DNA of 64,000 bases, taken from Orbicella franksi (lineage: Eukaryota). The stretch is taken from contig OZ116704.1 of NCBI GenBank assembly GCA_964199315.1, forward strand, positions 11,842,001 to 11,906,000. Direction: 5' to 3'. Under the pieces are notes generated by a model. It made no database searches, was not told the DNA's origin, and worked only from the letters and a program-made list of their open reading frames with translations. Below, one piece after another: positions 9,087 through 38,000 of the stretch. Within the stretch, counting starts at the first letter, position 1; each line of letters starts with the position of its first letter. The translations under genes and the position numbers were made by a program.

Positions 9087-12000
9087 CTAAGAATCATCTG
9101 AAATGATAAGGGTTTCTTCCTTTCTTGTGGATTTGCGGCTTTGGCTGATGATGATTACAGCAATGATGAGCCCGATGGCAACAGTCCCCAGCACTCCGAC
9201 CACCACTCCTACAATTATGACCATGCTGTCGGTGGACTCTGACCCAGAATCGTTGTGTTCCTTAGCTGTGGAGAGCAAAACGGACGTTTTATCAACTCGG
9301 ATCATAAGTTGACAAGTGAAGATAGTGCAAGTGCAGCCAACCCTCTGTTTTGAATCCAGTTAATCGTGGTCCGGCCAAAAATAAACATTTCACTGTGAAT
9401 AATAAGCCATCGCTCAACAGACAGAGGCTACATTTTGTAACCCCTATATCAAGACACAAGGTTTGTTTATAATGTTCGAATGCCTAGTATCAAAATAAGA
9501 CTTCCTTCTACCACCAAGGCTACAGATGACCAATTTCACACAAGCAGCGCGGGATATCCCCCTGCACAAGGAATTTGTAACCTCCCTTTTATGAGCTAGT
9601 TCAGGTCATAAATAGGGTATAGGGAAAATCGTAGATTGTGTTCTTAAATAGGATAAGGGTTTTTGCAAGCGGACCTCAAACCCTGCCCAATTTTTCTGGG
9701 AGTGCCCCCACCCCGTCCCCCGGTTTGTGACTAAGAGTAACAGCAAATAAATTAATTAGAGTATGGAAAAATTGAATTCGCAAATTACTTCATCAGATTC
9801 CAAGGCTTAGCAACCCCCTCCCAGGGACTCGACGAAATAATAACAACCAAACTATCCGATGCTTTAATTTTAAAATAAATTAAAACTGGTTCTCACCACG
9901 TTAGTATAGTTCGTCGCTCGCTGACTTCGCGCAACCCCAATAATACACTGGTATAATAGCTTATGACGAAACCATTTTTGATTTAAGTCGGACCAATTTT
10001 TATATATCAATATAAGCTTCATGAAATGAAGAAACTTTTTAGGTAAATTAGGCAGCTTTTTTAATGGTATGTTAAGCTTTAAGTGTCAACGTGTCATCGG
10101 GAAAAAAACTTACCATCCTCGTTGCCAGTCATGAACTTGGACTTTAAAGGTCCAACATACAAATCAGCACTCATATCTTCCTCGGTTGATCTCCTTCTCC
10201 TCCTGTTCTCGCCACATCCCCTGTCGCATCGTGATCCAGCGTCATCTGTGCGGCAAACCGTCAACTTGCAGTGGATGTACACATCATCTTGCCTTTCTTC
10301 GAAGCGAAAAGCGGCAAGATTGAAAAACTGCTCGGCTTTTTTTTCGTACTGGTATTCCAAGGTGTTATCCCGCGAGCAACTGGAGAATGGAACACAGCAA
10401 TATAAAAATTAAAATTATCCATCTCAAACAATGTATGGGGCATGGATAGGTCTATCATAGCCATGAAAAATGGTTTCACAGAAAGAAAAAGAAAAACACA
10501 AGGTTAAATTACCTATAATGGAGTAATAAGATGAAGTAACAGAAGAAATTGATGCGACCTTATATTTTGTGGGTTACCGCCTAGCAACATTCTTTCAACT
10601 TTACCCACAAACCCTGTGCATATGGAGTTTTTCTTCTCTATTTATCTTTTATCTCTTCGAAAACAAGAAGTCGATCCTGCACTTTGTAGCCTTTTTGTTC
10701 GAATAATGGACACCAAAGAAAGAATATTGCTAATCAGATTTACCTCTCGTGAAATTTCCTCTGCAGTTCTTATCAGTGTGTCAAGTGCGGCCGAAATTTA
10801 AGACGTATTGTATAAAACAATGATTTGGTCATACACCCCCCAGAGGTCATATATTTGTTTAATATGCTATCTATAGCAATAGTAACTTACGCGTCTTCAA
10901 TGATAAGATGGACGGGAGTGGAATCGAAGCTCGACGATGCTGTGGCTTTGCAGACATCCGGGAACACAACCAATTCCGAGTCACCAGACTCCACTCGGAA
11001 ACCAAAGTACATCCTCTGACCCAGACCAACCGCCTTTGGAAATTCAGTAAGGGTGACATTGTTGTTTTCATCCTCGTACATGTCCATGAAATAGGTAAAG
11101 TTCCCAAATCTGTCTGGAAAAGGAAGAAAAAGAATACTTTAAAACAATTACTTGCAGGTCTCCAAGAACAGATGGTATTCTTCAGATAACGTATTAAAAT
11201 GCTTTAGAGCGCACAATAGGTCTGCAGGTTATTCGCCAAGCATTTTCCATAAATTTAGTTCATCGTTCCAGATAGTTAAAAAATAGAATATTTCATTAAT
11301 ACAGGCTGACACCTTGACGGGATTCGAACCCATGACTTCCCAGATTCTGGTCGCCAGCGGGCGTTGGGTACTGAGCTACGAAGAGATTCATGTCGAACTA
11401 GGCTAGACCATTTACCAGGTTCACATGTGACAGTCCTCCTGCATACCGCTAGGATAGGTAATTTTGTCGAAAGTCGCGTTAAGTGTCGAAATAAAAAAAG
11501 AAGATTTAATGGTAAATCCAGACAATGTTTCTCGAGAGCATGGATTTGAAACTCTATTTACCAAGTTACCTGCGTCTGTAATGACAAGCGTAGACCTTGG
11601 ACTGTAAGACACTTTGGAGATTACAGCCTTCTTGTCGTACCCACACTTAAACGGTATAATTTCCGTGTGCACACGAGTAATTACTTCATCATCAGCCGGC
11701 TGACCCGCTTTAAGGTAAACCTTGTTCGTGTAAAAAATCTTCTCGCCATCGTCTTCTTGTTTAGTCATGCAGGCTTCAAGTCCAAAAGTGAACTTAATCA
11801 TGTTCTCGTCCTTATAGCTGGCAACACAAGCCTTGTCTTCAAGGTGAAGGACAGAGTCGTTGATGGCAAGGCCAGGGAAGTCTGAAATCTGTAAAGATAC
11901 CTCGATGTAGTCAGGTCGGCAATCGACTTGTATTTCTGTAAGTCAAACGAAAAAGACCACGGTTAAGGGAAGATAGAAATTGTAACCAACGAATAATCAT

Positions 12001-18624: not shown

Positions 18625-21600
18625 CTTCAACCCAGGCCGCAAGTGGTCAACTCACAACTTGCGTGAGATGAGAACTGATTTTCGCCCTTGAAACAGCGTC
18701 CGCAGACTGACTTGTCGCTAAAAGGTCCTCCTGTGGTTCCGTTTGACTGATCAGAAAACAGAGATGTTGAATATTCTAGACTAGACTTTGGCATGCGCCA
18801 CCTGCACTGCGTACTCGTTCTATGCTCGATCATTCAAACCCTTTGCATTACCGCAGAAAACATCCGAATGGGTCTCGGTATCACATTACAGTTAATGTGT
18901 AGCATGAATGCCAGCGCCTAGTGATAGAATTGGCATCTTGTTTTCATATGCCGTGGAAGATCCAGTCAATTCATCGATGGATAATCAGAGTAGGAACAAA
19001 AGATCTGATTCAATATTAGTTTGTTATTCGCTTCTTTTGTGCTAATTGCACCACGCTTATGTATTGTCCGTGTGAAAGCCCATATGATAATGCTGTACGG
19101 TCTCTATGTTATAAAGTCAGTTCTCTCTTAAATAATAAGAATAAAACAAGAATAACTAGTTAACAAGGAACTGTTTCTGGTCCCTGCAGACCGAATCTGT
19201 AAAATTAGCTTTGAATGTTTACACCAAGCTTACCGCTTTATTATATGTGTTTGACACGAACCGGAAGATACTAAACACAGGTAATTTATGCAAATTATGC
19301 AGAGGTGTCCCTGCTATTGCATTCCAACTGTTTGTTATTAGAACACGCTAGTGGCTCTCCAAATGAAGACAGAACCTTTTCCAAGTTTTCCTATCTAGTT
19401 AAAAGTTATGCGCATTGAGCTGGCATCATGCAGCTATTCAGGTTTTCGTTTTCGCATGTACTAGTCAATTAACTTAAGCAGACTCCATTACCGACCACGC
19501 CACTTTTGCAGTGGTGCCAAAAAGACTGTTTAATAAGACGATGAACACGTTATCAGTGAAAAGGTTTTAACCTCAGAATTTGAGTTTAAGACGTCCTCTG
19601 CCTCTTGTCATAGTTAGTAACCAACTATGACTATTAACTATGCTCTTGTGAAGGTGATTGCTTATACCCGGCGATAAGTCAATGAAATTCTGAGCTTGTA
19701 AACGAAGATTGCACGTGGTGATAGGGAAATAGCACCATTTAGGCGAAGACTTATCCTTTATTGAAAAAGACAATAGATAATTAAGCCATTTGTTATTTTG
19801 CAAAGATATTCGGGGTAAATTTAGCGTGACAAAGCTCAACCTGATACAAACGTGCTACTTCTGTGAAATACAGCGATCTTCATGATACTTCCACGACTGT
19901 GAAGGAATTCCACCAAATCATAAAAACCATGATATCTATACTCTCAACTTTTCGCTTACAGGAAGCTACAGGACGGTTACTATTCCCTTGTGCTTCTTGA
20001 TTGACGTTACACCGGTATTTGGACTGAGAAGAACATTTATGTTGCTCTCGTTCAGTGGGAGCTATCCTGCGCAAAGAGAGCACTTGGTCAAGTTATACAC
20101 TGACCTATACAAGGGGAATTAAACGGGTCAACTCAGTTAGCAAAACGAGACCAACAAAACGTTTGAGCTTTGCATTTTGCAGGAATTATACTATTTCAGC
20201 CCTGGCCTCAATGAGATGTGGGTGCAGGCCATGATCAAAGCCGCGGCAAAGAGTTGATGGTCCTGAAGCAAGCGGACACATGATCAAGGAAGCAGTAAAC
20301 AAGTCATGTCACTTTCGTGCTTATGCTTGGAAAATGCATGTGTTTCTGGTACAACTATTCCACACACGTACCAGCCAGTTTCCTTTCCTAGGGGAGGGGG
20401 GGAGGTGGTGGGGGAACGAGACTGGTTTGGGAGCCTACACCAACTAAACTTCTAAATAAGTCAGCTAAGCGTGAGGAAGTAAGCGCAATTTACCTGGGGT
20501 TCGATTTGGTGCATTAGGCAGGGGATGACAATACCGATCTTAACAGTCCTCGTCTGCCGAGATTTCAACAAAAATGGTAGTCTAGTTATTAAAACATATT
20601 TCGCACATCTAAGAAAACAGAATATACTTTATTCGGATTTATTTTGGCAGTGAACAATACAACTTACAAAAGTTGTCCTCTCTAGGCTTCTTAGGAGCTG
20701 TTTATACATTGTTAGAAATCGATCAACGGTTTCATAGGCATCATTCATGTTACACATAGGATCTCCAGACCTTGGTTAAATTTCGTCGCTCGCTTGCTGG
20801 CTTCCAAAAGGCCCAGTTTACTCAAAGAGAGATAAACTTAAGCGAACAGAATTTATGAAGTGGTAAAGTTTGGTTTGCAAACCTGATCAATTTCTCCGCC
20901 AAAACTCTGGACTTACAGTAAAGGACTGGGGTCGAGTCCTTTGAAGGTCACTTGGAACTTTGAAAGTAGCTTCCCAGAAGCCTAAAGGATCAAGAATCTT
21001 GCCAGCAATATGCAGGTGTGCGGTGGAACGTTACAAAGGCTTCACAAGAACTTGAAATCTGAATAAAGTTAATCTGCAACTCGAAGACTTAAATTGTTAA
21101 GATTACTAATGGTCTACTAATGACAAAGGCTATGTTATACCTTGTTGTTAGCAAGGATGAATGCTCAGGCAAATAATCTTATTTTCTCGCTTACTCGACT
21201 GAACTGCCTTGGCAAGTGATGAACGGACTAACAAACAAAACTTTCAGTCAGGAACTCTACGGTACTGGGTTTTAGTGCACGAGTTTCCTTGCCTTTGGTT
21301 AAAATTAAGAACAGCATACCTGAGTCATCGGGGCTAGCGAGGAGAAAAGGTATTTATTTCTCCCTTATCGTAGTACAGCTTGAATATAGAAAGAGCATGC
21401 ATTCTTGTTACCCTTTAACCCACCGAAAGCAAGTTAACCTCTTAAATCTTATATTCCAAGTTACGTTTAAACGAGTTCTGTTCTTCTCAAGCTACCTTAG
21501 AACAACTCAAACATTCTTCTTAAAGAACGTCTTTAAGACATCCTACTTTTTGATTCCTTCTTGTCACAATCCACTCTCCCCCCCCCCCCCCCACCCTCTT

Positions 21601-22255
21601 TTTTTTCTCCAAGTCAAGACATCCACGAACTTTACCGAAACACTCAGAAAAAGCAAAGAATTGTGTGGGGACTATCTGCAATGAAACTTCCTCACAGCAA
21701 AAGTATTTAGACTTTTTAAGAAGCGGTCGATGGAACACGCTGCAGCAAAAGATAAAAAGTAGCTGTCCCCGAAAAAAGGTTAATGGATTTGAACCATAAT
21801 GACCGTTTTAAAGTAGCTTGAGCAAAACCTAAGTTTCCACAAAAAGGTAATTCGTTTCCTGATGAGAGAAACGGGTTCATAAAGCTGTATTGTCTAAAAA
21901 AAGTGAAATCATCGTAACTTACAGAGGAGCCATTTTACGGAAGTTATTTTCAAGGTGATTAGATGCGTAATAAAGGAAAGTTAAATTAAACATGTTTTGT
22001 TCACATAATCTACATAAATCAGGTCACGTAAAATGCGAATTCCCAAATAAAAATCATAGCTAGTGAATCAAATGAAAAGTAGTTTTAAAAGTAAACTAAA
22101 AATCCAACTTAAAAAAATATAAGATAGAGTGGCGATCTGTACTAGAAAATATAAGGTAGAGCGATCTGTGAGACCAAGCATTTTGATCTCGGACTACTTG
22201 ATTCTGTGAGGAAGATTCAGTTCTTTCAAACATTACAGCTTAAATGCCAATCTTT

Positions 22256-25200
22256 CTACATTTCTTCACCGACAATGAGGGAGGCGCCCTTCGCAGAGAT
22301 GTTGCGGCGTCGGCTGATGACGACTACCGCAATGATGAGGCCGATGGCGACGGTCCCCAACACTCCGACAAGTATTGCCACGATCATGACCATGCTGCTG
22401 TTAGAGGCCGATTCTGACTCGTAGTTGTGCTCTTCAGCTGTGGAGAGGAAAGCAGAGTTTTTTTAGAAGGACTCAAAAAAAGTAAGTGATAACAGCCCAT
22501 TCGTCCCTCTCTAACAGAGTGGTGGATTACGCCAGGTCAAGCCTGCCAAACACTGACAAATTTGAGTCACCCCCCTCCCACCCTCCCAAGGTTTCGGGTT
22601 TATAATTTAAGTGAGCAAAGTTCTTAAGCAAAGTACTGCCGCTTTCAATGACAAACCAAGCATTCTATCTATTTATCATCTTAAAGTCGATACAGTTAAG
22701 TTGACCGTCCTAATGAGTTTGTAAAATTGACTTCAGCCTGTCTTCTAAACAACTTCAAACCTTTTCTCTTAAGGGAAACGTTACAAACGTCACTAAGCCC
22801 TATAAAAACGCTACGGCGGTAAATTTTCCACAAGCAGATTTAGTTCATAAATAGCTAGTAAGAGTTCGGCTCAAATAAAAGATGGTAGATAAAAAAAATT
22901 CCAACTGTTAACACTTTTTTCGGCATCATGTTTGAGATTATGATCGACAACAATTTATGACGCCTTTAATTCAAGTGCAAAATAGTAATCAAAATCTGAA
23001 CTGTTTATCAACAAAGTTCCTGTGTTGAACAAGTCTTTTTATTCAACATTGAAATAGTTTCTTTACATTTTCATGACTTCAGACTTCCACTTCCTGGTGA
23101 TAAGGCATTTTCAGTTTTTCGATCGCTTACCTTGGCATGCTATCTATCCCAACGGCGCAAAAACCAATATAACCACAACACAATCGCCCTTATACGTAAC
23201 AGTATTTCAAAGTCAAACTGAGCCAAACAAGAACAATATTTTAGGACAGTTAAGCCCATTTTGAAAGAATTTTCTCACAGATGTTTATTTTGGCAGATGC
23301 AATGGAACATTCAGCAAGGCAAACAGTAACTTCGCTTGAACAACTCTTTGTGATCAACCTTTCCCAAGTTTCATTCATTTTACATTTTCTGTACTCCCTA
23401 CTAACTTTAATTAAGTCTTGTTTCAAAGCAAACATTAAAAAATTGATAACGTCACCATAAATCAGTTAAACTGGCGAAATTACTTACCAGGCTCATTCGT
23501 CATTTTCTTGGTTTGCAACGGTCCAACATAGAGCTCTGTACTCATATTTTCCTCGGTTGATCTCCTTCTCCTTCTGTTCTCGCCACATCCCCTGTCGCAT
23601 CGTGATCCAGCGTCATCTGTGCGGCAAACCGTCAACTTGCAGTGGATGTACACATCATCGTATCCTTCTTGGAAGCGAAAAGCGGCAAGATTGAAAAACT
23701 GCGTGGCATTTTTTTCGTACCGATAATCCAACGTGTTATCCCGGGAGCAACTGATGACAAAAAAATAGCAGTGAAAAGTTTTGTCATTTCCTTCATTCAG
23801 TCTAAGCTATTTATCAGTTATTAGAAGCCCAAAGGGACTTGCATGTAAAAAAGTGAACTTCTCCCCTAAAAGGAACATCAAAACTGCACTATATGCCGAG
23901 GTGAAAATGCTCACGGCTTTAGCGAGATTCATTAAAGGCTTTTTGTCCACAGATTCAGTAAAGATTTTCAAAGACTTACTGAGGAGTTTTTGATGACACA
24001 TAGCCAATTAGTAAGGAAGCCACACAGTTTCTCAACTTACGCGTCTTCAATGATAAGATGGACAGGAGTGGAATCAAAGCTCGACGATGCTGTGGCTTTG
24101 CAGACATCCGGGAACACAACCAATTCCGAGTCACCAGACTCCACTCGGAAACCAAAGTACATCCTCTGACCCAGACCAACCGCCTTTGGAAATTCAGTCA
24201 CGATTTCGTTGTTAGTTTCATCCTCGTACATGTCCATGTAATATGTAAAGTTGCCAATCCCATCTAGAAATGGAAAACAAAAATGGTATAGGACTTTTCT
24301 GGCACCGTCATCTGACACCGTCACTATTTGTATTCGAATACGTGTCACAACGGCACCAGCTTAAAACAAAGTGTCGTATTTAATCAACAGTTTTCGGTTG
24401 CTTTAATGGTTTTGGTTTCTTTGCGAAAACAACTAACAAAACAATGGTTCCTTCCTGTTGTATCAATTTTTTTCCTATGCACACCTACCTTGCGAAAATG
24501 GTTTTGTTATTAAGCGTGTTTTTGATAAACAAAACATCTTCCAAGGTTTCTTATTTAAAAAAGGCAAATGCTTTCAAACGTCCTTAGCCTGCGTAGCAAG
24601 CGTTTCTGTGGGGTTCGGGAGCAAAGAATTACAGCGCGAAAACTGGAGCCCCATTTTCCACGCAGACAGAACACCGAAAATCCCGTTCGTCGGTCTTTCG
24701 TTGCTTCCAAACCCCACGGAAACGCTTGCTACGCAGGCTAAAACGTCCTCGACGTATTGACCAGTACCAATGGTACATTGTAGGTGTCCTCCTATTTTCC
24801 CTCAAAAAATAACTCTGTTAAACTGACGTCTAATTTATCAACAGATACATATAACTACAACACGCCAACCTACGTTAGCTACAATTAATTTGTGTGTTCC
24901 AAAAAAGCATTAGTAAGATTTTCCAAGTTACCTGCATCTGTTATGATAAGAGTACTCCTTGGACTGTAGGACACTTTAGAGATTACAGTCTTCTTGTCGT
25001 ACCCACACTTAAACGGGATAATTTCCATATGCTCACGAGTAATCGCCTTATCGTCCGCCTTTTCATCAGCTTGGAGGTAAACACTGTTCATGTAGTAAAT
25101 CTTATCGCCATCGTCTTCTTGTGTAGTCATGCAGGCTTCAAGTCCAAAAGTGAACTTAACCATGTTCTCGTCCTTATAACCAGCCACACAAGCCTTGTCT

Positions 25201-25731
25201 TCAAGGTGAAGGACAGAGTCGTTCACAATAAGACCTGGATAGTCTGACAATTGGAGTGATACCTCAATGTAGTCAGCCATGCAAACAACGTCTATTTCTG
25301 GAAGGAAAAAAAAAGAGGAGTTAGGGGGATAAAAGCACTAATGTATCACTGCATGTAAGAAACAAAATTACTTGATGAACCCATCCATTATTTTATTTCT
25401 CTTAGTTAGCCAGCCAGTGACATCATTCTCAGTCTTTTGGCTTTATAAGCAAGTCAGCACTTGTAACCTATTTGTTCCTTACGTTTGGCAAGTAATCATT
25501 TAATAGTCTCTTTTTGTTTCTTGTTGTCGTTGTTTGATTTTCTATATCATATTCGGCCTTCATCAAATGAGGACTTCTTTAAATTTTTCTGTTGTGATTA
25601 AACTTCAATTTCTTGAAAATTAAGTCTAATTGACTCAGGCAAAACGTTGCCGAATGTTAAAAGCTGAACACTGTTCCCAAACTCACTATTATCAACATAT
25701 AGCTCTTTTCAGGAGGCGCCGCTAAAAATTT

Positions 25732-25775
<44 letters not shown>

Positions 25776-28700
25776 AAAGCAGCATAAGGTAGTTTGAGGA
25801 TAGGGCCATTGCCAGTATGAGGCAAACCCCGAGGCTCTTCCCTCAGTTATTTAATTTTATTTGTTTTTCTTGTCGTTTCTGTTGGTTCTTTTTTGAAGGG
25901 AGAAAGTAAAGACTGTTGAAGGCCTAGGAAGAGAATTGTCTCAGTCGTAGTTTTTTCTGGCTACGGTCCTGTAGGGTCATTGAAAAAGCTTTCTTTACAG
26001 GACCCTCTCGCTAACTTTCCATGTTTTAAGTCTACGCATGCGTGTCGTTACCTATCTTGAAGTGAACACCCTTTGCTTAGCTCTCAGGCATAGTATATTA
26101 ATTCATTTTCATTCTTTCTGCAATGATGTTGAATATATGTAACTTCGCACATCTCCGCAGATTTTTATCTCAGTCTACTTCCAGAGAAAGTGATCTTTAA
26201 ATGTCCGATTGCAAAACTTTGCATTATGGAATTATATTCTTTGGGCGTTTTTGTCTTTCATAATTTCTGATAAAAGATAGTAACAATGAAAAATATATGC
26301 ATTTTTTTCGCTCTAATCTTCACTCTAAGCAGGGAAAATAATTTAGTGTAAACTATGGCAGGCAGGTTTCAAAGATCGCCATTCTTTCAGGGTTTTTTTT
26401 TTTTTTTCAAAGGTTTTAACTTCAGGCGAGTAAAACGCTGGCGGTTATGTGCTCTTCTTTTTTGAAGGTGAATTTGAATGCAACATCTACAGAACAAAGA
26501 TCAACAAAGGCGAAATCCAAAGAATTTGCATAATAGAAACTAATTACAAATGGAAATAGGGCTGGATAAATCACGATTGCTGTCACTCGCGTGCGCTGTT
26601 GAATTGATTATTAGTAGTTTTGATCTCAAAAAGCGCTTGATATTTTTTTGTTTTTAACTTTACAAAGGATTTACTGAGCGTTTATGGAAACTAAAATCAA
26701 TGTGCGAATACAACTTGCACGGCTTGTCGCTTCAAAAGCGAATGATCAGGCCGTCTGGAGCGAGCTGCATAACAATGAAGTTATCTTATACAAAGTGTCT
26801 TTGTTTATCAATAGACATAAAGGTTTGGTTTTGATTTGAATAGGATTTCACGCATTTTTGGTTAACTCTTACTATTGTGACCGCAAAATTAGCTAGCATT
26901 GTCCACAGACCAGGGTTGCCTGCAAATTCAATATTCTGGAGCATTCTTTGATTCTTAACTGTGTACGAATTCAGAGCACCGAGCCTTTCTTAACAAAAAA
27001 AAAACTCAATCGACCCCCTGGCAGAAATGGCAAGCAAACACTTCAAATGCTGATATACGACCCTGAGCGAAGACACATAATACCGTGCTAGGCTAAACAG
27101 TCTCGACTGAAACATTCTACGAAATAACGTTCTTTCTGACATGTTTGGGAGTAAGAAGGTTAGCTCAAGTTTAATAAACAGGATATATGCGTGAAGGGGA
27201 ATTTGTTACGGAAAATATGCATTCAAATTGGTTTAGGAGCACATGGTGTAGTCAACAATAGATGGCATTTTTTGAGTGTCTAATGAAATATTATTCCTAT
27301 GGAGTCAAAAGCCAACCAAGTAAGATAAGCTAAATAAAGTCTGTTCATTTATCTCTCGGGGATCAATCTTGTTAGAATTTGGTCTTCTTGTTAGAATTTG
27401 CTGCAGATTATGATCTTTGAATAAATAACTTCTAACTACTTTCTACTGAATGTGAAACAGAGCGGAATACAAATCACTTACTGGCTTCGGTGTCCAAGGT
27501 TATATTTTTACCTCCGTTGGACCCTGAAACTAAAAGCGAAAACAGAGCACGATTAACAAACGCAAGGTACGGTTACAAATCTTTAAATTAAACACAAAAT
27601 AAGAAGAAAAACAGATAGCATAGAGAGCAACCGTATTATGAACTATGCGCAAATGAATCTTTTGAAATTTATTATGCAGCAACCCCACCTAATGACTGCA
27701 GTGAAGTTTAAGATCTAGAGCTGTATTTACAAGCAGTTACTGCTTTCTGCAGGACCAATATTACCCCCATATTTAATCAAATGTTTCTAACCGATCGAAA
27801 CAGAATCTCTGCTGGGCACAGAATTCCGATGGACATTTTCGTCGTTTCACTTACTCCTGCAAGTCAGTTGTATAAAGGTTTGACATTTGAACACATGGCA
27901 TCACGAAAGAAGATGAGAAAGTTTCTTCAGAAAGCTAACATCGTTTCTGAAATTACCTTAACCTCGCGCTCAGATGGAAACGAAGGGTTTACTCGAAGCT
28001 TCGCACGATCGAAAACTCTCTAGAAATCAACAGTGAGCAGCGCGGGGACAAAAGTCCAAATTCGATCCCAAATTTAACACTGGACAAAGCAAAGTTAAAA
28101 GTATACCATACCTAAGGTAAAGCAAAACGAGGCGCAGAATATTATGAAGGCCTTCATTTCTCTCTCCTAATCAGATCGCACTGGAAACACAACGTTCGGC
28201 ACCGACAAGTTCACCGCCGACTGACCCAACCAAACCACGCGTCACTGAAGTCGCACACCTGGCTATTATAAGGGATGTAGTAAAGCGTGACGGAAATACA
28301 ATCGGCCGGGTCTCCTTGAAAGGGCGGGTTTTTTCTTTGTTGTTTGTCGGGAAGAACAAAGTGCATTCACAACTGAGATTTCGAGTTATTTGAGTAACCG
28401 ATCCCGTATACCAATTAAGGTGCGATAGAAGGTCGCGTTGGTAAGCGTGACGAACCTTCATTAGACTACCGTTATTTCGCCTCTCAAGTATATAAATTTT
28501 TAAAGCTTGGTCTTCTATTTTGCTCGGCAATGATTGAAAGGGAGTGACGATTAGACCTCGCTATTTGCATTTCTTTATGTTTCTTTATGTGACGGGCCTC
28601 GAGGCAAATGCAATTATGAGACGTGTTTAGACTGCAAAAGGTCTATTTTGCATAAATACTGATAATAACGACAGAAAGATTCTTTACGGCTAAGTGAAGA

Positions 28701-29542
28701 GCCATATTCCAAAGGCATGAAAACACGCAAAGTTCTGCATATTAATCCTTGCAGTCTGCAGCACAGGCTTCTTACGTTACTTGAACGGCTTACGATGAAT
28801 CGGGGAGCAAAGCGGAAATATAACAAACTGCGAATGCATCAACCAGCGATTGCTGGTCCAGAAGTTTCGATAATTCCAATGCCACACATGGGTGGAAAAA
28901 TGTTTAGCTACTAATAGGCAGTAGTTTCGAGGTCATTCTATGGTTGATGGAGATAACCATCTCGACAAACAGGCTCTCTTTTTTTAACCACGATTGCACA
29001 AAAGCAGGGGAGTGACAGTTCATACAAAGAAAAAAAACACTCTGAGCAAGCAATTCGCTCTTCATCTTTCACGCCCTGTTGTCACTCTGTTGCATTATCG
29101 CGTGACAAACATGGCCAGTTCAGTGGATTTTAGAACAGACTAGAGGCAACTAGAGGCCCGTTTCTCGAGGATCTCGAAATGTTTTCGTACCGGAAAGCCG
29201 TGGCAAAAGCTCAAACCTTATGATTACAGAGCTGTTTAATTCTTATATTCTTAATATGAGCAGAGATTCTCTACAAACAAGAAGTTTCAGGCGTATACAC
29301 CTCTCTGTTTTCAGATACAGATTAATCAAAAATGGCTTTGCGGGCCCGAAAAGTTTCCGGGGCTTTCGAGAAACGGACCTCAGAGTCGCTATCCCCTGAA
29401 AAGTGACAGGCAGAAACGGGCGTGCGCGAACAGGGGACCAGTTGCTGAAAATCTTCTTCAACCTATGAGTGCCTTTCCCCCTTTCCAAGGGAAAGGTGAC
29501 CAGAAGGGGCTGAGTCTTCTTGGGTCCATTCTCCCTGCCAAT

Positions 29543-29581
<39 letters not shown>

Positions 29582-32500
29582 TCTATCTATCTGTTTATTT
29601 GTTTATTTATTTTATTAATTTATTTACTTATTAGCTTCTTACCTAGCTATCTAAAGGGAAAGAAGGATTCTTCGTAGTTTTTCCAGTTTTTTGGCCATTT
29701 GGTGTTCGGTCGAGAGAACGGTTTCATATGCTAAATGTCCTTCACTGAGAATCATGGGAAAGGATAAATAGAACCACCTTTAGAACCAATACTTTATACC
29801 AGGGGAGGCAGCGTGACCGAGTGGTTAGTGTGCCGGACTTGAAATCCGGAGGACCCTGGTTCAAATCCTCCCGTCCCTACCGCTCTCTGAATTTGTTCTT
29901 GGTAGTCCCGAGTTCAACTTCTCCGCCGCGTTGTGTAAATAACCAACTGGTCAGCCTCCCACCAGTTGGAATTCTTAATAGTTTACATGCTGTTGTATTT
30001 GCAATATTTGGTAATTTATTTACAGTGTCCCTACTTAGCACATGATAGAGTTATTTATTTATTGATTGATTTATTATTACAGACCCCGGGATGTGGTGGG
30101 CATCACTCCATCGTTATCCTCGATTATGACCGTCATCTGTCTCCTTGGTCCTAACGCAGCACTTGGACGAGATGGACCATGGAGCTTAACGCTGACCAAA
30201 AATGATTCTTCACCCTCGTCTGCCTCGTCATCTATAATAGGGATATCAAATGTTTTCGTCGATTCGCCCTGTGTAAAAGATATCCGGGTACCAGATACTC
30301 CGATGTAGTCAGCCCCGTTTATGGCTGTCACGTCAGTCGTGGTGACGCTAAAAGAAAAATCAAGTGGGGTTAATGTTTTAAGACCTAATAGCAAGGATGC
30401 TGGATCGGTTTTAAAGAAGTTCCAGGTTGAAATCGCATCCTTCTCACTGCCGCGTGATGTAGTTGTATTTGGTGGTCAATTCCTCCATGCTCTGCAAAAA
30501 GCCCACTGTCCCACTATTTACGATTCTTAACACGTCTCTATTCCATTTACGATATTTGCTTGCTTATGAGTACAGCAGCGCTAAACACTTCGACCCTGTT
30601 AACTTAAGTGATTGAGAATTTTTAGTTTTTTTCCACATCTTTTTTTACCTACTTGTCAAAATAGCTTAATTCTGATTGGTGGAGAGCGAGTGCCGTTATG
30701 GTTTATTACTGACTGTCTGCATCATATGCAGCAAAATCTTTCAAAAGTGTCTGAAGTGTTTTGAACTGATACCTTCAGCTTACTTTTGAAAAGGCATTCC
30801 TTTTGTCTAATACATGAGCCTTTTCCATTTTGCCGGAGTTCAAAATCAAAATAGTCTTAATTATAATTTCCGTACAAATTCCATACCTTACAACTACAGA
30901 CACTGTTGTATTGCCAGTGTTTTCTATTACAATGCTCGCAATCCCTGCATCTTCTGACACTTTTAACTCCACTGCTTGAAACTGGAATACACCCGGAGAA
31001 TCTTTGAAGACAAAACAGATCCCTCAGACTTTATTGTGCAACCAAGGAGGTAGCGTGGCCGAATGGCCGAGGAGGTGTGGTATCGGCCTTAAAATCCGAA
31101 GCTTGCGGGTTCAAGTCCCGTTCTGACCACTGGCTGGAGTGGTAGACTCGTGTTCAACTCCTCGGGCAGCGAGGCGTGGAACATGGCGGCGGTCTAGCGG
31201 CGAACTTGTTGCGATTTCCTCGCGTTATGCGCAAGCTCGTTACGGTTCTCAAATAACTGACAGATGTCTGTAATGGGGCGATCATCGAAACCACCCGAAA
31301 GAGGCAAGATCAAAAGGTAGCTGCCACCCATCCCCGTCCTCCCGGCCTTGGCCACTTTTGTAAATAACTAACTAGTTGGCTCTTCTAACCTCGGCTTATA
31401 ATTGCCCGGCCCCTGTAGACTTAAAAACACCGCCTAACACTAAACAAAGGTTATTTATTTATCTAATTTTATTTTTCTCGTTTTCTGTTTCTTTTTTTAT
31501 GATAGGTATATTGGAGAAGACCCCAGCAGAGCATATATAAATTCTTCATTATAGTTTAAGAAAGCTCTCAGTCAAGATTATAATCGTTGAGAAGCTAAAG
31601 TTGTTCATTACTTTCCTCAAGATGTTACTTTTTCCTGTGTCACCGTAATGATTCGATTTAGCGCCCGGGCGCTTATTTACCTTTGGTACCTCATAACATA
31701 TTTTAACCTAATTTAACATAATTTAACTCGTTTTTGTTATGTCCCCGTATTAGTAGGGGAGTTTTTCCCCAGCTAGGTGGTTGATGACATTCTTAATAAA
31801 GTTTCTATCTATCTATCTTTCTACCTCAAGGGAGGGCGCTTATTGGGAACAGGGCGCTTTCTTTTTAGAGAAACAACTGAATGCTCAAAACAAAACTTGA
31901 AGATGAAATCTTTCATTTGAAGGAATTATGCACTCACATGGACATAATAGTTGAGAAACTCAGACGAACACCAAACATCTTTTCCTGTACTTGGTTTTGT
32001 TATTCGTTTTGTCTAGGTTCTTTAGCTTTTGTTTGAGCAGTCTCGCGGACCTCAATAGTTGAAAATCCCAGGAAAGCTTAGAATTATTAGAATTATCTTT
32101 CCCAAAGTTTTCATCGGCTCGTCATCATTTATTTGTCTTCGTCTGTAAGTCTTTCCGGTTTTGTCTAACATATGCCAGGGGGGTCTGTTTAGTTCCCACG
32201 GTCAATAAACCCAAACATGTCAACAATGATTTAGGCATTCAGCTTGTATTTATCAGTAGAAGCAGTAGAGCTTTAACAGTCCAACAAACCTTCTGCTATC
32301 GAACATGTTTTTAATGCAGTCCTGAGAACACATTTTTTCATCCACGTCTCACCTCAGTGCTGAGGAGATTTGAAAAGTTGCAATAGATATGTCTGGTTTT
32401 GAGATCTTCTGAGAAGGGCACTTACCCAACAGACGCTTCTGGAGTCTTCAGCTAAAGCCTCTATTATATTACAATCGTGATATTTGAAATGTTTTACAAT

Positions 32501-35003
32501 ACTAGCAATCTTCCGATTATGGTTTACATTAAGACTCGTAAATTACTATAAATATTGCCGGCACCAACGTGTTAACAATCAAAATTCCCCTTTCAGTTTC
32601 TTGTTACATCATACAATTTCCTAATGTTTTTCTTTCTCTGAAAAGATGCTGAACGATTTAGAGACGGCCTTGTGATTCGGAAGGTTAATTTAAGTCTGAA
32701 ACTATACATTCTGTTCAGTAATGATTTGTTATAGTATCTAAAAGCGAGGGCCGGGCGTTTCGTTGCTAATCTGTAGTAGTAGTAGTAATAAGAGCTTTTA
32801 TTTCTGAGTCAAAGTTGCTAACCCGCCTAACAGAGTAGTGTTACTTATCATCTCGTCTTTCGTTAATGAAGTTTTGAAATGTTTCTCAACTTATTATGAA
32901 AGCTATGGCACAGAAACACGAATATGGCTCTTGCTTGAATTTTCATTATACCATCTAATATGAGTATTAATAGTTTTCTTTAGGAGTCGATCAGTCTGTC
33001 TGGTTTAGATGCATCAGTGTGTATTTGCCTGTACGATATTGCAAAGTGAAGACTGATATGGGTAAACTAACTTGTCGTCAAAAGCATTCTCAATGTTTCA
33101 GAGGATCTTAAAAAATTCTATTTTCGAGCGTCTTAGATCGCAAAAAAATTCTTCTTTCCACCTCCCCTCCCTCCACACACGCACCCACTAGATAGACATT
33201 GTTTTTTTTTTTTTTTAATTTATGTCTTAATCAGACCACAACAACTGTGCAATATTGAATTTTCAGAGAACTCTTGATGCATGCATTTGTCTAAGGGGTT
33301 AGATGTCGCACAGCGTCGTTTTTCAAGTGTCTCGATTACTTTTACCGCCCATTGTGACTTCACAGGGCATAACTTACCTCTTGCATGTTTATAATATAAT
33401 TAAATATAATTAATGTGTTGAAATATAGCTAAAATATTGTAATATAATTAATATCGCACTTTAAAGTTGAATCCATGCAGTTTTGAATGCTTCAAGTTAT
33501 AATGCATTCATCGACCGTACAGGATTGGATATAAACACTACTCATGATATTAAACATCGTAAAGGTATTACGAAGAAATTTGATTGTAATGTATGCAATG
33601 TTCCAATTCTACAAGAACACGAGGTCTCCTTTTCTCAATTCCACAAGTCCAGTCCACTATTTCTGTTAACAAGCTGTTCACTCTTTATATGGTTATCTGA
33701 CGATCGATAACTCCTGTTTAAATAATGCATGAAATATTATACTGTTTTATATTATACTCCAGACGGAATAATGTTTCGAATTGTCCATTTTATCTGTAAA
33801 CAGTAACTTCCAAAGCCTTTACAGAGAAATTCATAACGATGATTTCTTATCTCTAGTCTATGCAAGCTGTAATGTTACCCCCCTTCGATTCCATTGTTTA
33901 TAAATTTATGGAAGACGAGTTCGTGACTCTTGTGGGAATATTTCCTCTGAACATTTTTCGAGAAGTCAAGCAAGGAAATACGGCAATAGATGTGATATTT
34001 CTTATAATTGGAAATCATTTAATTTCGATATGTTCAGACTACCATACTCTTCTAAGCTAAGTGACAATTAATGTTTATGAACCAATCGCATACGAGTAGA
34101 GAACTTGTGCGGTGTCCAGATATGATATATAATCCGTCGGCGCGAATAAGAAATTCCACTGTTAATACTAAATTTAACATTTTCTCTCCAAACCTGTTGA
34201 TTTCTTTGGTTAAATTTGAGTATCAGTCAGTCATTCTGCTTGCACAAATTGTAGTCTATAATTGCCGTATCGCTTGTGATCCAGCAAGAAAGTGAGAAAT
34301 ATACTTTTTGCCCAAGCTGCAGTTTGCACATACGCCAAACCGTGAAAGTGTCCCTTAAATAACGCGACGATCTGCCTTAACTGCAGCTCTCAAACGATGG
34401 ACAGCAAATGATGATCAATCTGGATAATGCCTTTAGTTTATAGCATGTTATGGCGTTAAAATATTTCACAAGTGAATTTGTAAAGAAATTTTTCGATATT
34501 AGATTACCGACTTCCTCTTTCAAACACTCTATATAGCAACATCCGTTTCCCCCTATTCAAAATGGCAGCTAATTCGCTTTCAATCTTCTAATGAGAGACT
34601 CGGCGGTTTGGAAGACTAGGTTAATTTTGCGCTCTTTGTGCTGTTTTAAGTGTATTGCAGGGCAATTTGACTTGCACACCGCGCCCTCTGACAGCTTGTC
34701 CGTTCGCTGAATACAGTTTAATCACGCCAAACTCTACTAGATCAGATGTAGTAAATTAATTAATCGCAAAGATAGTTACAAGTTAACGTTTTGCTGTAAG
34801 GTTCGGACACCACTTTACTCATCTTGGAAAATAAGCAATGACTTGCTAAGATTCTATAAAGATGGTCGATTTCCCCTAGGGTAATTGAATATACAACTGG
34901 AACAATCAAACGAAAACAAACTCACAACTTCTGAACAAATAGCGCACTAACCTTGGGCTGAACACATGTAGACAACTAAGGACAGGATAAGGAATCTCAT
35001 CAT
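22256..35003 (-). CDS. Gene B: Calx-beta plus ZP transmembrane protein, about 503 aa, 8 exons
   Basis: Exons 35003-34952 (MMRFLILSLVVYMCSAQ, signal, donor GTTAGT), 31001-30887 and 30347-30085 (Calx-beta: PGVFQFQAVELKVSEDAG...TAINGADY...SFTQGESTKTFDIPIIDDEADEGEESFLV...TVIIEDND), 27529-27482 (48-nt linker), 25297-24932 (ZP-N), 24263-24041 and 23750-23488 (ZP-C, RRRRR furin site), 22437-22256 (TM, stop TAG). Total 1512 nt = 504 codons. The ZP/TM part is very secure. Joining the signal and Calx-beta exons rests on phase compatibility; the donor at 30084 (GTCTGT) is weak. Confidence 0.8.
24585..24740. mobile_element. 156-bp MITE with a 9-bp target-site duplication (Mutator-like by TSD length)
   Basis: 31-bp terminal inverted repeat TAGCCTGCGTAGCAAGCGTTTC(T/C)GTGGGGTT (1 mismatch). 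Direct repeat AAACGTCCT at 24576-24584 and 24741-24749. Confidence 0.9.
25734..25775 (+). repeat. (CAA)n microsatellite
   Basis: About 14 consecutive AAC/CAA units. Confidence 0.95.
29154..29380. mobile_element. MITE, PIF/Harbinger-like
   Basis: Terminal inverted repeat AGG(C/T)CCGTTTCTCGA. The flanks TAG and CAG form a near 3-bp duplication. Confidence 0.6.
29541..29625 (+). repeat. (ATTT)n/(ATCT)n microsatellite
   Basis: Tandem TATT units grading into TATC. Confidence 0.9.
29804..30075 (+). mobile_element. tRNA-derived SINE
   Basis: A-box-like TGACCGAGTGG, B-box GGTTCAAATCC (29858-29868), non-tRNA body (GAGTTCAACT...TGTAAATAACCAACTGG) and a (TTAT)n tail. Confidence 0.75.
31046..31445 (+). 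mobile_element. tRNA-derived SINE related to 29804-30075, interrupted by an insertion
   Basis: Same head GGAGG(T/C)AGCGTG(G/A)CCGA(A/G)TGG, B-box GGTTCAAGTCC (31108-31118) and GTTCAACTCCTCGG. The family body resumes at TTGTAAATAACTAACTAG after about 190 bp of unrelated sequence. Confidence 0.6.
32000..34700 (-). mobile_element. Highly degenerate LINE-like (non-LTR) relic in intron 1 of gene B
   Basis: Only frame-broken hints: VHRL...RRVI..LSRF (ORF1-like), GGNITACID and PIL-GR (APE-endonuclease-like) and YYNKSL (linker-like), with many stops. The boundaries are approximate. Confidence 0.3.
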
Positions 35004-38000
35004 CGCTGACAACTCTTCCACCAGCATGCAGAGACTTAATTTGGGCCTAAACGCCAAGAGCCGGCGGGTCTATTGACGAAGCTTTCACCTCAGAAGCAAA
35101 GCGTGTGAGCCGTGTGTTCGCGACAAAGGCACTCAGCCATGAATAGTCGACGTCTGTGACCTGAGTGCGTGATGATTAACAAGTGACAGCATGAATATTT
35201 AATATTGATCGATGTCATTCCTATAAGACAGCTAATTTCATACCAAAGAAGCCGAGATCAGTCGCCGTGAAACCACACTGAAATATTTGTGACAGTCTGG
35301 CGGGAGAGGTCTACCCGCAGATTAGAGCTGATAATTTTCATTCAGGCAAGGAGCTTTAAAAAGGTTGCCATTTACGCTTCACGACTAATAAAACGAGATA
35401 GCTTGTTGAGGTGAACTTTGGCCATAGCTTCTGTTCGTGATTGTATTGCACACCATGTGGCCTGCGACGAATTAGAGCGATTAAAACTAATACCATTTGT
35501 GAAAACACGAAACAAGATAAGCCCAAATATTGCAAACAGACAGCAAATGAAAACTGTAGGCCATGCTACTTTAAAGCCAAGGCCAAATAAAGAAAACAGA
35601 TCGGAATTACAATCCCTATGAAACAAGAAAAGGCGCACACTTTGGTCAAAGATTTAATTAATACTATTTATAATAGTTTTTGTCCGGCAAAGGCAATTTT
35701 GATAAGCATCTTTTGAGCTAAATCGTTTCCAGGAACCTCTGTCGAGGCTCTAGTTTCGCCTTGACGATAAAAAAGAGAGAAAGAGAGAGAGTGAGAGAGA
35801 TAGAGATAAGATCCTGATCATAAGGGTTTGGGACACTTTTTCTCTGCGAGAAACCAACAATTTAAAGTCATAGAATCGAAATAGCCTTACAAAGATCTTT
35901 TCCTAGCCCATCCCCCTCCCCCCTGAACAATGTTGAATTTCTTTGACTCTACAATATATTTGCGACTCACATCTTTGACTCTTGACACCCAACATTTTCC
36001 GGGGGGGAATAAATAGAAATGCTGTTTTAAAGAAAAATGACGAAGTGTCCCCTACGTATTGTCCAGGATTGTAGGTTCCGAATGCGTACATGAGACATAT
36101 AAAGCGGCTCTCGACTTACATCAGATACTGCTTATATCGAAATTGTTAGATGGTCTTCTCGTTATCCTTACAATACACCGCATTATTTTGCAAGAAATTA
36201 GAGAAACTAAGTAAATCGTGCCTTATTGTTGTTGAAATGACTTCCATCAACAGCAAAATGCACAGTCCTGCAACGAGAAGGGCTGAAAAACAGGAGTTTT
36301 AATTCTTCAGGAATTCGGTTAAGTTGGTTCAGGGGAGATTTGCGATAATGCGAGCGATGATTTTCATCGTCTCTTGTATGAACTCAATTAGATAGAGGGA
36401 AAAGTTGGACTTTATTGCTTGAGAAAACTACTTCTCAGTAACTCGATAGAAACGTAAAACAGGCACGAGCTGTTGACGTAATGATGGCACGTCCAAAGAG
36501 AATGTGTATTTTGATCATAACGTGTGATTTTCCTTTCTCTTACCAGCAGAGTTTTCTAAAAGAAATAGAAATCATTTTCTCCTTGCTTCTATTGAATTAT
36601 AGATGGAAGCTGTCATGGAAACTAAAGTTCGAGAGAATTCGAACTGAAGATAAGATAAGATAAGATCATGGAGATTTGTACCTTCATACTGTGTAAGTGT
36701 CAAGATATTTAGCGGACTAATTTGGGACAATGAACATTGAGAATGAACCTACAGTACTTAAATGCAAAAGATAAATATTTAGAACACTTAAAAAAAATTT
36801 AAATTACAATCTAAAATGTAATTAGAATTATTTGCAACGTAATCTATTCATTGCAAAGTTTACAGCTTCGGCAACACTCCTTGCGGCCTTTGTTCTCACA
36901 GCATTATAGCAATTTCGTACCTATTTTTTGAACAAGATCTGTAGTAGTGTAATCATGTTTATTTTATTTTCAACAAAAAAAGTCTCAAATTTCTCAATAA
37001 TGCCGTCAAAAAACAAATGAGAATTTGAGAACACGAGAGAGATTGGGTAACTGAATTTGTTTGTTTTCCTACTTTAATTTACTTTTCTACAATGTTTACA
37101 AATTTATGGAGTTTTTCGTGATAGTATGATAAATGGGTTAGGCTTCTTTATATGCCGGCAAGTATACATATTTAACTCTTGCGTAACAAAGTCTGGTAGA
37201 ACATAACCTTTTAGCATAAGAGATGTCTTAGAGTGGTAGGAGTAGTCCCTCTTTCGTTCAGTTCGTGGTGCGTGACGGGAAAGTGAAACCTGCGAGAATT
37301 TTTTTTCCCGCGCGGCCAGATTTCGCGCGGCTATATTTTCCCTCGAAGTTTATTTACGGTCACGCTAGACGAAAGGGACTACTCGTGGTCTAGAGATGCC
37401 GGGGTACCTAAGAGAGCTGGACTGTTATGATTCCTTCTAAAGCAAGTGCTACGCATTGACATACTCCGGGCATAGCCAATCGAGCACAATCGAACAATTA
37501 GCAATATTCCCAGCGCGGTTATCTCAGGCTACTACGAGTATTCTTTCACCGTATTCTCTGTCGTCAGAGGAAAATACTTTTTAAGAAAGAAAAAAGGAAG
37601 TCGAGGGCAAGCACTGAAATAAGTGCAGTAAAGTTTGATGAACTATTTTAATCTGAAAACATTGTCTTACTTGGTATTATCGACAGTGCAAGCTTGGTCT
37701 GTGATGGCAAATGCTACTGCTAATTTAAAGTTACTGCCGCAAAAGTTCACAACCATTCCTCTCTATTAATTATGCCGGTTTAGTATAAAGAAAATTTTGT
37801 ATTTGCATCTTTTCGATTTTGTTTCTTTTTTTTTTAGTTTATTTGTCTGTGATTTCGGTCATTCCGAGGATTCTGGATATTCCGTGTATTCCGAGAATTC
37901 CACTCCTGGCTTTCCAAACTCACTCAACAAACATACGATCGCCCATGTCACGGTGGATAAGTTGACTGTTGCGCAACGTCGCGTGACACGAATAAAGTTC

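Follow-up and report, generated by a model that had tools for sequence, protein, structure and literature searches.

A coral zona pellucida-module gene with two signal-peptide first exons and a probably optional Calx-beta cassette

Introduction

Proteins with a zona pellucida (ZP) module form egg coats, the urinary network of uromodulin (UMOD) and the tectorial membrane of the inner ear, and the function of a ZP filament is largely set by the domains that precede the ZP module. Here we describe a gene of the stony coral Orbicella franksi that lies on the minus strand of a 64,000-nucleotide stretch of genomic DNA (GenBank assembly GCA_964199315.1, contig OZ116704.1, positions 11,842,001 to 11,906,000), in which Calx-beta exons precede the exons of a ZP module. 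This whole stretch is hereafter called the window, and positions are given in its numbering. We consider it quite probable that this is one gene with two alternative signal-peptide first exons and an optional two-exon Calx-beta cassette, which gives rise to three mRNAs and whose products would build filaments with or without a Ca2+-binding head. New in this account are a first exon inside the gene, the optional nature of the cassette, the range of corals that share the architecture and the higher evolutionary rate of the head.

The locus and its exons

The composition of the window is eukaryotic. A 34-kb stretch of the Orbicella faveolata assembly GCA_002042975.1 (L014) matches it at 98.4% identity over 30.8 kb; in this older assembly an annotated gene covers the same exons, and the next gene encodes a 671-residue protein with a CUB domain and a ZP module. 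The minus-strand exons were assembled from stop-free segments and splice sites, and the borders from E1 to E8 are all GT..AG with compatible phases. The long model reconstructed in this way equals the RefSeq protein XP_020602028.1 of O. faveolata (511 amino acids) except for one residue, M146I. The features of the gene, in the order of transcription, are the following (a slash marks an exon border):

34952-35094, minus strand: E1, upstream first exon, with 5' untranslated region (UTR) from at least 35094; phase 1 out
30887-31001, minus strand: E2, first exon of the Calx-beta cassette, with strands A-B and the glutamate equivalent to E385; phase 1 in, phase 2 out
30085-30347, minus strand: E3, second exon of the Calx-beta cassette, with the motifs DY, IIDDEADEGEESF and IEDND; phase 1 out
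28203-28990, minus strand: conserved non-coding block upstream of E1', delimited by interlocus alignment and RNA depth
28112-28202, minus strand: E1', internal alternative first exon; ATG at 28156, phase 1 out, donor TTAG/GTATGG
27482-27529, minus strand: E4, 48-nucleotide linker exon (VSGSNGGKNITLDTEA), common to all isoforms; phase 1 in and out
24932-25297, minus strand: E5, ZP-N exon with four conserved cysteines (PF23344)
24041-24263, minus strand: E6, first ZP-C exon (PF00100); acceptor at 24263
23488-23750, minus strand: E7, second ZP-C exon, with a furin-type site RRRRR followed by the hydrophobic patch ELYVGPL
21565-22437, minus strand: E8, stalk, single transmembrane (TM) helix and short cytoplasmic tail; stop codon at 22258-22256, 3' UTR to at least 21565

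Translation of E1 can start at the in-frame ATG at 35027, which is the RefSeq start, or at 35003/35000, the start common to the orthologues; the donor follows position 34952 and the encoded signal peptide reads MMRFLILSLVVYMCSAQ. The internal first exon E1', located downstream of the Calx-beta exons and upstream of the ZP exons, opens with ATG AAG GCC TTC and closes with TTA G/GTATGG, encodes a second signal peptide, MKAFIIFCASFCFTL, and ends in phase 1 as E1 does. The donor of E3 reads G/GTCTGT at 30085, and at E<=1e-8 the genome contains a single copy of this exon. A longer version of E6 starting at 24359 was rejected: it meets stops or frame shifts in three orthologous loci (L001, L003 and L007), and both mRNA contigs described below begin this exon at 24263.

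An earlier note, drawn from the letters of this DNA, had read here a complete Calx-beta motif split over two exons with the acidic residues IIDDEADEGEE and IEDND, between a signal exon and a ZP module, and a protein of the order signal, Calx-beta, ZP, TM. The motif is present (31001-30887 and 30347-30085, PF03160), as are the other exons, all on the minus strand with GT..AG borders and compatible phases; its further claim that the ZP module is a close paralogue of that of the CUB-bearing gene A in the same window agrees with a protein identity of 75-90%.

Splice joints and three isoforms

Twenty public runs contain E3, seven of which are recorded as RNA. Logan contigs of four RNA runs, taken from four studies, were aligned over window positions 25100-31050, and in all four the joints E2-E3 (30347 to 30887), E4-E5 (25297 to 27482) and, unexpectedly, E1'-E4 (27529 to 28112) were found with CT..AC ends. 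Each of these runs also has a 27-nucleotide loose end at 31004 that matches the end of E1 in reverse complement, and the E1-E2 joint is therefore seen too. The contigs spanning E2-E3 leave the genome match exactly at 30085 in three runs and continue for 19, 29 or 39 unplaced letters.

Two mRNA contigs match the window closely. One of them (L010; 1855 nucleotides, 98.6-100% match) runs from E1' (28202-28112, aligned at 98.9%) through E4, E5, E6, E7 and E8 (22438-21565) with the 3' UTR, and encodes 375 amino acids without a Calx-beta domain. The other (L011; 99-100% match) joins E1 (35094-34952; aligned over 35094-34949 at 99.3%) directly to E4 and encodes 377 amino acids; E1 and the ZP exons therefore belong to one transcription unit. 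E5 matches both mRNAs at 100%, and E4 is present in both as well as in an mRNA contig of a relative (L012). The two Calx-beta exons together comprise 378 nucleotides (115 + 263) flanked on both sides by phase-1 introns, and thus form a cassette that can be skipped. In the protein collection, the cluster of the 375-residue protein also holds the 511-residue XP_020602028.1 and the 377-residue form.

We propose that the gene is expressed as three isoforms. Isoform 1, the major form, consists of E1' and E4 to E8 and encodes a ZP-only protein of 375 amino acids; isoform 2 joins E1 to E4 through E8, again for a ZP-only protein (377 amino acids), with the cassette skipped; both are shown by the mRNA contigs above. 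Isoform 3, shown in relatives and represented here by the RefSeq model, would run from E1 through E2 and E3 into E4 to E8 and carry a Calx-beta head, a linker and the ZP module in 503-511 amino acids, as a minor form here. The head-less ZP-only form that starts from E1' is the dominant mRNA and the Calx-beta form is the minority: the depth of the E2-E3 contigs amounts to 17-27% of that of the ZP-N exon E5 in the four RNA runs (rough values, taken from per-contig means).

The ATG, reading frame and donor of E1' are kept in four orthologous loci of other corals (L001, L002, L003 and L007), and the changes in the most distant of them are all conservative. Upstream of this exon, the block at 28203-28990 is likely to be an internal promoter and 5' region. 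The sequence from 27400 to 28990 aligns at 79-82% to L001, L002 and L007 and at 66% to L003, the most distant locus, for which this 1.6-kb block around E1' is the only alignable part of the intron between E3 and E4. In RNA run X7, depth is about 200 up to around position 28280 and only about 4 upstream of it. A TATA-like string, TATAATAG, occurs at 28265-28272, about 30 nucleotides upstream of the rise in E1' depth in the same run; the three closer orthologous loci do not share this string.

Two further stretches of the E3-E4 intron stand out in the RNA contigs. At 29080-29477, between E3 and E1', contig depth is very high in all four RNA runs (up to about 2500), with many loose ends at 29277, 29332 and 29374-29383, as would suit a transcribed repeat or transposon. 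Just downstream of E3, a repeat at 29804-30037 inflates RNA depth beside the E3 donor; its match in L002 is inverted and lies elsewhere (18391-18170), and a further match is found in L003 (9204-9373). An alternative acceptor for E3 at 28180, inside E1', was discarded, as it would lead to a stop after four codons and the joint is not listed in the RNA runs.

Domain identities and the predicted Ca2+ site

Against Pfam cut-offs of 27 bits (PF03160), 24.7 bits (PF23344) and 24.6 bits (PF00100), E3 alone reaches 49.9 bits with the Calx-beta profile PF03160 (E 3.8e-13, profile positions 40-119) and E2 alone gives a weak 17.2 bits (profile positions 3-43); PF03160 is also precomputed on the long-form protein (P0308) and its orthologues. 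The ZP-N profile PF23344 scores 48 bits on E5, and the ZP-C profile PF00100 scores 41.5 bits on E6 and 37 bits on E7. Ten ZP cysteines were located in P0308, four in ZP-N (C173, C204, C223 and C265) and six in ZP-C (C344, C365, C401, C406, C415 and C419), and all of them are invariant or nearly so in an alignment of 17 sequences (A2). The order of RRRRR, ELYVGPL and a hydrophobic TM stretch was read from the sequence and is conserved in the same alignment, in which the N-glycosylation sequon of E4 (N160, I161, T162) is likewise nearly invariant.

P0308 was modelled with AlphaFold2 from an alignment of 17 sequences. The model places the head at residues of about 28-140 with a predicted local distance difference test (pLDDT) score of 80-91, a disordered linker at 144-167, which leaves about 25 residues between the head and the ZP module, and a helix at 466-495 that corresponds to the TM segment; the ZP part has lower confidence because the alignment is shallow. 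Foldseek matched the head to the first Ca2+-binding domain (CBD1) of two Na/Ca exchangers, NCX1 (2DPK; TM-score 0.86, root-mean-square deviation 2.6 A, 32% identity) and CALX (3EAD; TM-score 0.89-0.91), with 29-32% identity over the NCX1 and CALX matches. The modelled head thus has the seven-strand beta-sandwich fold known from CBD1 and CBD2 of NCX. The ZP part was matched to the polymerisation region of uromodulin, 4WRN (E 5e-14), followed by UMOD filaments and ZP3.

In NCX1 CBD1, Ca2+ is held by E385, D421, D446, D447, E451, E454, D498, D499 and D500 (PMC3386913). With the numbering anchored in the alignment at the E454K residue of 3US9, eight of these nine acidic ligands are kept in the coral head (E385, D421, D446, D447, E451, E454, D498 and D500), and the position of D499 is taken by asparagine. 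Among nine long forms of six genera, five of these positions (E385, D421, E451, E454 and D498) never vary, and seven of the nine forms retain D446/D447. The earlier note had inferred a Ca2+-responsive filament subunit: the fold and the ligand residues of NCX1 CBD1 are indeed kept, and binding is what sequence and model would predict.

Orthologues and breadth in corals

A word-index search with E3 returned exon-sized open reading frames (ORFs) on genomic contigs only and led to the four orthologous loci. In each of these, E1, E2, E3, E1', E4 and E5-E7 are collinear on one strand; E8 was recovered in three of the four, its expected place in L001 being at the very end of the retrieved sequence. 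The E2 protein sequence is 64-81% identical in these four other coral genomes, and the donor of E3 is conserved in all five genomes.

Full-length proteins were searched with an alignment composed of a 507-residue first row (P0068, unrelated to ZP-N) and rows of the ZP-N exon, and then through clusters at 90%. This brought up both the long and the short isoforms; the identity and coverage values of that search carry no meaning, given the unrelated first row. The long form exists as a complete mRNA in relatives: the mRNA contig L012 has 80-93% nucleotide identity, exon borders at homologous sites and a junction homologous to E3-E4 that reads CCAGG/TTTCAGGG, and a second full long mRNA (L009) belongs to the cluster of Stylophora XP_022785063.1. 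In that cluster at least eight Logan contigs yielded a 497-residue form. Orthologous models are XP_022785063.1 (Stylophora pistillata), XP_068734243.1 and XP_068685222.1 (two species of Montipora), and KAJ7353937.1 and KAJ7353940.1 (two Calx-beta and ZP gene models of Desmophyllum pertusum), all of which have the order signal peptide, Calx-beta, linker, ZP-N, ZP-C, TM. Long and short forms share 90% clusters in Orbicella, Stylophora, Montipora and Acropora, and Acropora also has a cassette-skipped form with an E1-type signal. Together, Orbicella, Stylophora, Desmophyllum, Montipora and Acropora span both major scleractinian clades.

Other searches were less productive. An exhaustive HMMER search with E3 was dominated by giant multi-repeat Calx-beta proteins with summed scores and found no orthologue; a metagenome scan gave a single match at 50% identity (L008); and a search with the region of Stylophora residues 1-160 led back to the two clusters of that protein and to no others, which says little on breadth.

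Evolution of the head and of the ZP module

The cassette evolves faster than the ZP module. In pairwise comparisons with five relatives, the ratio of non-synonymous to synonymous substitution rates (dN/dS) is 0.44-1.4 for the cassette vs 0.08-0.24 for ZP-N and 0.15-0.24 for ZP-C, so that the cassette lies at about 2.5 to 17 times the ZP-N value, with the reservation that these pairs share the window branch and are not independent. Counts of non-synonymous and synonymous changes differ between cassette and ZP exons with Fisher p of 1e-6 to 0.02, a test in which the pairs again share the window branch and site numbers are approximate. Between genera, the head is 35-58% identical and the ZP part 63-75%.

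As to the origin of the cassette, the closest relative without a ZP module that the searches gave is a Desmophyllum model with four Calx-beta repeats (P0068, about 50% identity), which lies on the same contig as the Desmophyllum ZP cluster. The cassette may be one repeat unit captured by exon shuffling.

Relation to known systems

The gene belongs to the coral 'ZP domain-containing protein-like' family, and its product is a type-I membrane protein. It resembles UMOD in its succession of ZP-N and ZP-C with ten cysteines, in a furin-type site with an external hydrophobic patch, and in being anchored to the membrane at its C-terminus. The filament arms of UMOD are EGF and D8C domains and its anchor is glycosylphosphatidylinositol, whereas the arm of the coral protein is a single optional Calx-beta domain, its anchor is a TM helix, and its polymerisation would follow by analogy. 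The head shares with CBD1 of NCX1 and CALX the fold and eight of nine acidic Ca2+ ligands; in contrast to the coral domain, which is single, extracellular and placed on a ZP module, CBD1 is cytosolic, is paired with CBD2 and regulates a transporter. In NCX1, D499 also bridges to CBD2 (PMC3386913), and it is this position that holds asparagine in the coral head. Closer at hand are CUB-ZP proteins (gene A in the window; Stylophora XP_022785115.1; CUZD1-like), in which the ZP chassis is 75-90% identical and the head is CUB, not Calx-beta.

The earlier note named no described protein of this minimal architecture. Full-text literature searches found no description of Calx-beta combined with ZP, the two terms being met together in another sense in literature on vertebrate domain shuffling, and the orthologue accessions are not mentioned in the paper texts searched. 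The architecture is nevertheless already present in automatically annotated models of Orbicella, Stylophora, two Montipora species and Desmophyllum. A widespread and annotated architecture was among the outcomes that the earlier note had said would refute its proposal, and this outcome holds in part. The names of these RefSeq and GenBank models are silent on Calx-beta, and the models themselves include neither the internal first exon nor cassette skipping.

A ZP protein is one of seven proteins common to four coral skeletal proteomes (PMC7115838), and a coral ZP protein falls in a scleractinian orthogroup with skeletal-matrix members (PMC7902050). The 'ZP domain-containing protein' of the skeletal matrix (Acropora millepora JN631095.1; Stylophora XP_022806326.1) has the same family name as the protein described here; the Stylophora accession found in the skeletal proteome, XP_022806326.1 (PMC7115838), differs from the orthologue of our gene, XP_022785063.1. 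One supplement of the Desmophyllum proteome preprint contains no OS493_03107x or 03108x entry. A role of the gene in calcification or Ca2+-dependent adhesion, as the earlier note envisaged, may be considered, with no direct support from these comparisons.

Interpretation and alternative readings

We suggest that the precursor would be cleaved at the furin site and polymerise into extracellular filaments in the manner of uromodulin, and that in the long isoform a flexible linker would present a Ca2+-binding head on the outside of the filament. Promoter choice and cassette splicing would set the proportion of subunits with and without the head, which could then tune a Ca2+-dependent property of the matrix. 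We speculate that corals regulate the share of Calx-beta heads in a ZP filament and so switch the matrix from a plain state to one that can be crosslinked by Ca2+ or is competent for recognition, and back, for instance in calcifying or outer epithelium; in this specific form the idea is distinctly unlikely to hold. If true, it would represent a regulated modular decoration of filaments, which is not known from any ZP protein.

A number of results weigh against one gene with an optional Ca2+-binding head. Concerning the transcript, the joint E3-E4 (27529 to 30085) is not among the joints listed in the four Orbicella RNA runs; the coordinates 30085, 27529 and 25297 that had been predicted for the junctions are all correct and the joint of 27482 with 25297 occurs in RNA, but that of 30085 with 27529 is the one not listed. 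In run X2 the E3 contig continues unspliced (30349 to 29930), in run X7 the E4-E5 contig has four upstream letters that fit E1' or the intron and not E3, and the protein collection holds no Logan-assembled long ORF of Orbicella, the RefSeq model being the only long form in its cluster. Concerning the head, a Desmophyllum paralogue (OS493_031077) is without D446, D447 and D499, and the fast evolution of the cassette is less what a strictly conserved ion sensor would show than what weak constraint or diversifying selection would produce. The geometry of the contigs (k=31) is suggestive only for run X4, where the E3 and E1' contigs both extend by 29 letters as if entering E4, and gives no path from E3 to E4 in runs X7 and X2. 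The long mRNA of Orbicella rests on the E1-E2 and E2-E3 joints, the use of the donor at 30085, the conservation of this donor in five genomes and the RefSeq model, and we consider it very likely that the E3-E4 joint exists in Orbicella.

If the Calx-beta exons were instead a separate upstream gene, they would encode a small secreted protein ending at the TAA two codons past 30085, a view to which the stop codon and the AATAAA-like strings directly after 30085 lend some appeal, together with the exon-level depth of the unspliced X2 contig and the unlisted E3-E4 joint. The earlier note had named such a separate transcript as the outcome that would undo its proposal; the joining of E1 to E4 in L011 points to a single transcription unit, and L012, L009 and several RefSeq models join the homologous Calx-beta exon to the linker exon. 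Moreover, a search among proteins of 48-152 amino acids found no 145-residue product, and the donor G/GTCTGT is kept in all five genomes, unlike the AATAAA strings. The stretch that follows the donor (30040-30084) reads TAATAATAAATCAATCAATAAATAAATAA in the window and is a (CAAT)n microsatellite in the orthologues, and the strings therefore look accidental; polyadenylation at 30085 was rejected, as there is no upstream signal and the downstream strings are not conserved. A separate gene is thus highly improbable. We give as little credence to the opposite notion of one constitutive product of signal peptide, Calx-beta, ZP and TM in which every filament subunit would carry the head. In its favour, the reading frame is continuous over the exons, RefSeq gives the 511-residue form as the product, the minimal protein foreseen by the earlier note is truly encoded (XP_020602028.1), and the same architecture is transcribed in other corals (L009 and L012); it is, however, neither the sole nor the main product, given that the dominant mRNA begins at E1' and has no head (L010), a second mRNA skips the cassette (L011), the E2-E3 depth is a fraction of that of E5 in four runs, and short and long forms occur together in Stylophora, Montipora and Acropora. 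It would also be very surprising if the long isoform were mere noise of splicing or promoter use, without function, and the ZP-only protein were all that mattered: the minority depth and the lack of a long ORF assembled from Orbicella runs would suit this view, but the cassette ORF is intact, phases and splice sites are conserved in five genomes, the architecture is kept in Orbicella, Stylophora, Desmophyllum, Montipora and Acropora, and the 497-residue Stylophora form recurs in at least eight Logan contigs.

A more serious rival accepts the same gene structure and assigns the head another task, namely that of a fast-evolving recognition or adhesion module (for self/non-self, microbes or a partner) in which Ca2+ is at most structural. 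It is the fast evolution of the head that makes this role a serious rival, with cassette dN/dS well above that of ZP-N and head identity falling to 35-47% between genera against 63-75% for ZP; the Calx-beta repeats of sponge aggregation factors are polymorphic recognition molecules, and the Calx-beta domain of integrin beta4 is not known to have a functional Ca2+ site. Against it, the five ligand positions that are invariant in nine long forms of six genera, and the retention of D446/D447 in seven of them, argue that metal binding itself is under selection, and the pairwise dN/dS values share the window branch. We regard such a recognition module as possible, if rather doubtful, and prefer the optional Ca2+-binding head.

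The gene offers coral biologists a concrete target: the tissue and life stage of the head-bearing isoform, and its possible part in Ca2+ binding, matrix assembly, calcification or recognition. It also corrects the picture given by the databases, in which the RefSeq product is the long form, since in the RNA contigs the head-less form prevails. With the sequences already in public databases and the function only inferred, the gain is limited.

Neighbouring genes and further observations

The CUB-bearing neighbour lies at window 10127-11939 on the minus strand, and the same tandem ZP cluster is found in Orbicella, Stylophora and Desmophyllum. A Desmophyllum pertusum contig of 723,938 bases carries five gene models (P0196, P0364, P0068, P0171 and P0187): OS493_031076 is ZP only, 031077 is a Calx-beta and ZP model with a degenerate Ca2+ site, 031078 has four Calx-beta repeats without a signal peptide and enters an intron, 031080 combines Calx-beta with a partial ZP-N, and 031083 is a CUB-ZP model. 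The four-repeat model may be the source of the cassette or a mis-split gene. In Acropora muricata and A. palmata, 926-residue RefSeq entries named 'uncharacterized protein' (P0319 and P0320) share a cluster with the 391- and 522-residue Acropora forms, and may be fusions of neighbouring genes. Within the window, a run of 180 N occupies positions 41718-41897, and a more distant ZP gene, with 29-37% protein identity, lies at 58898-60911 on the plus strand.

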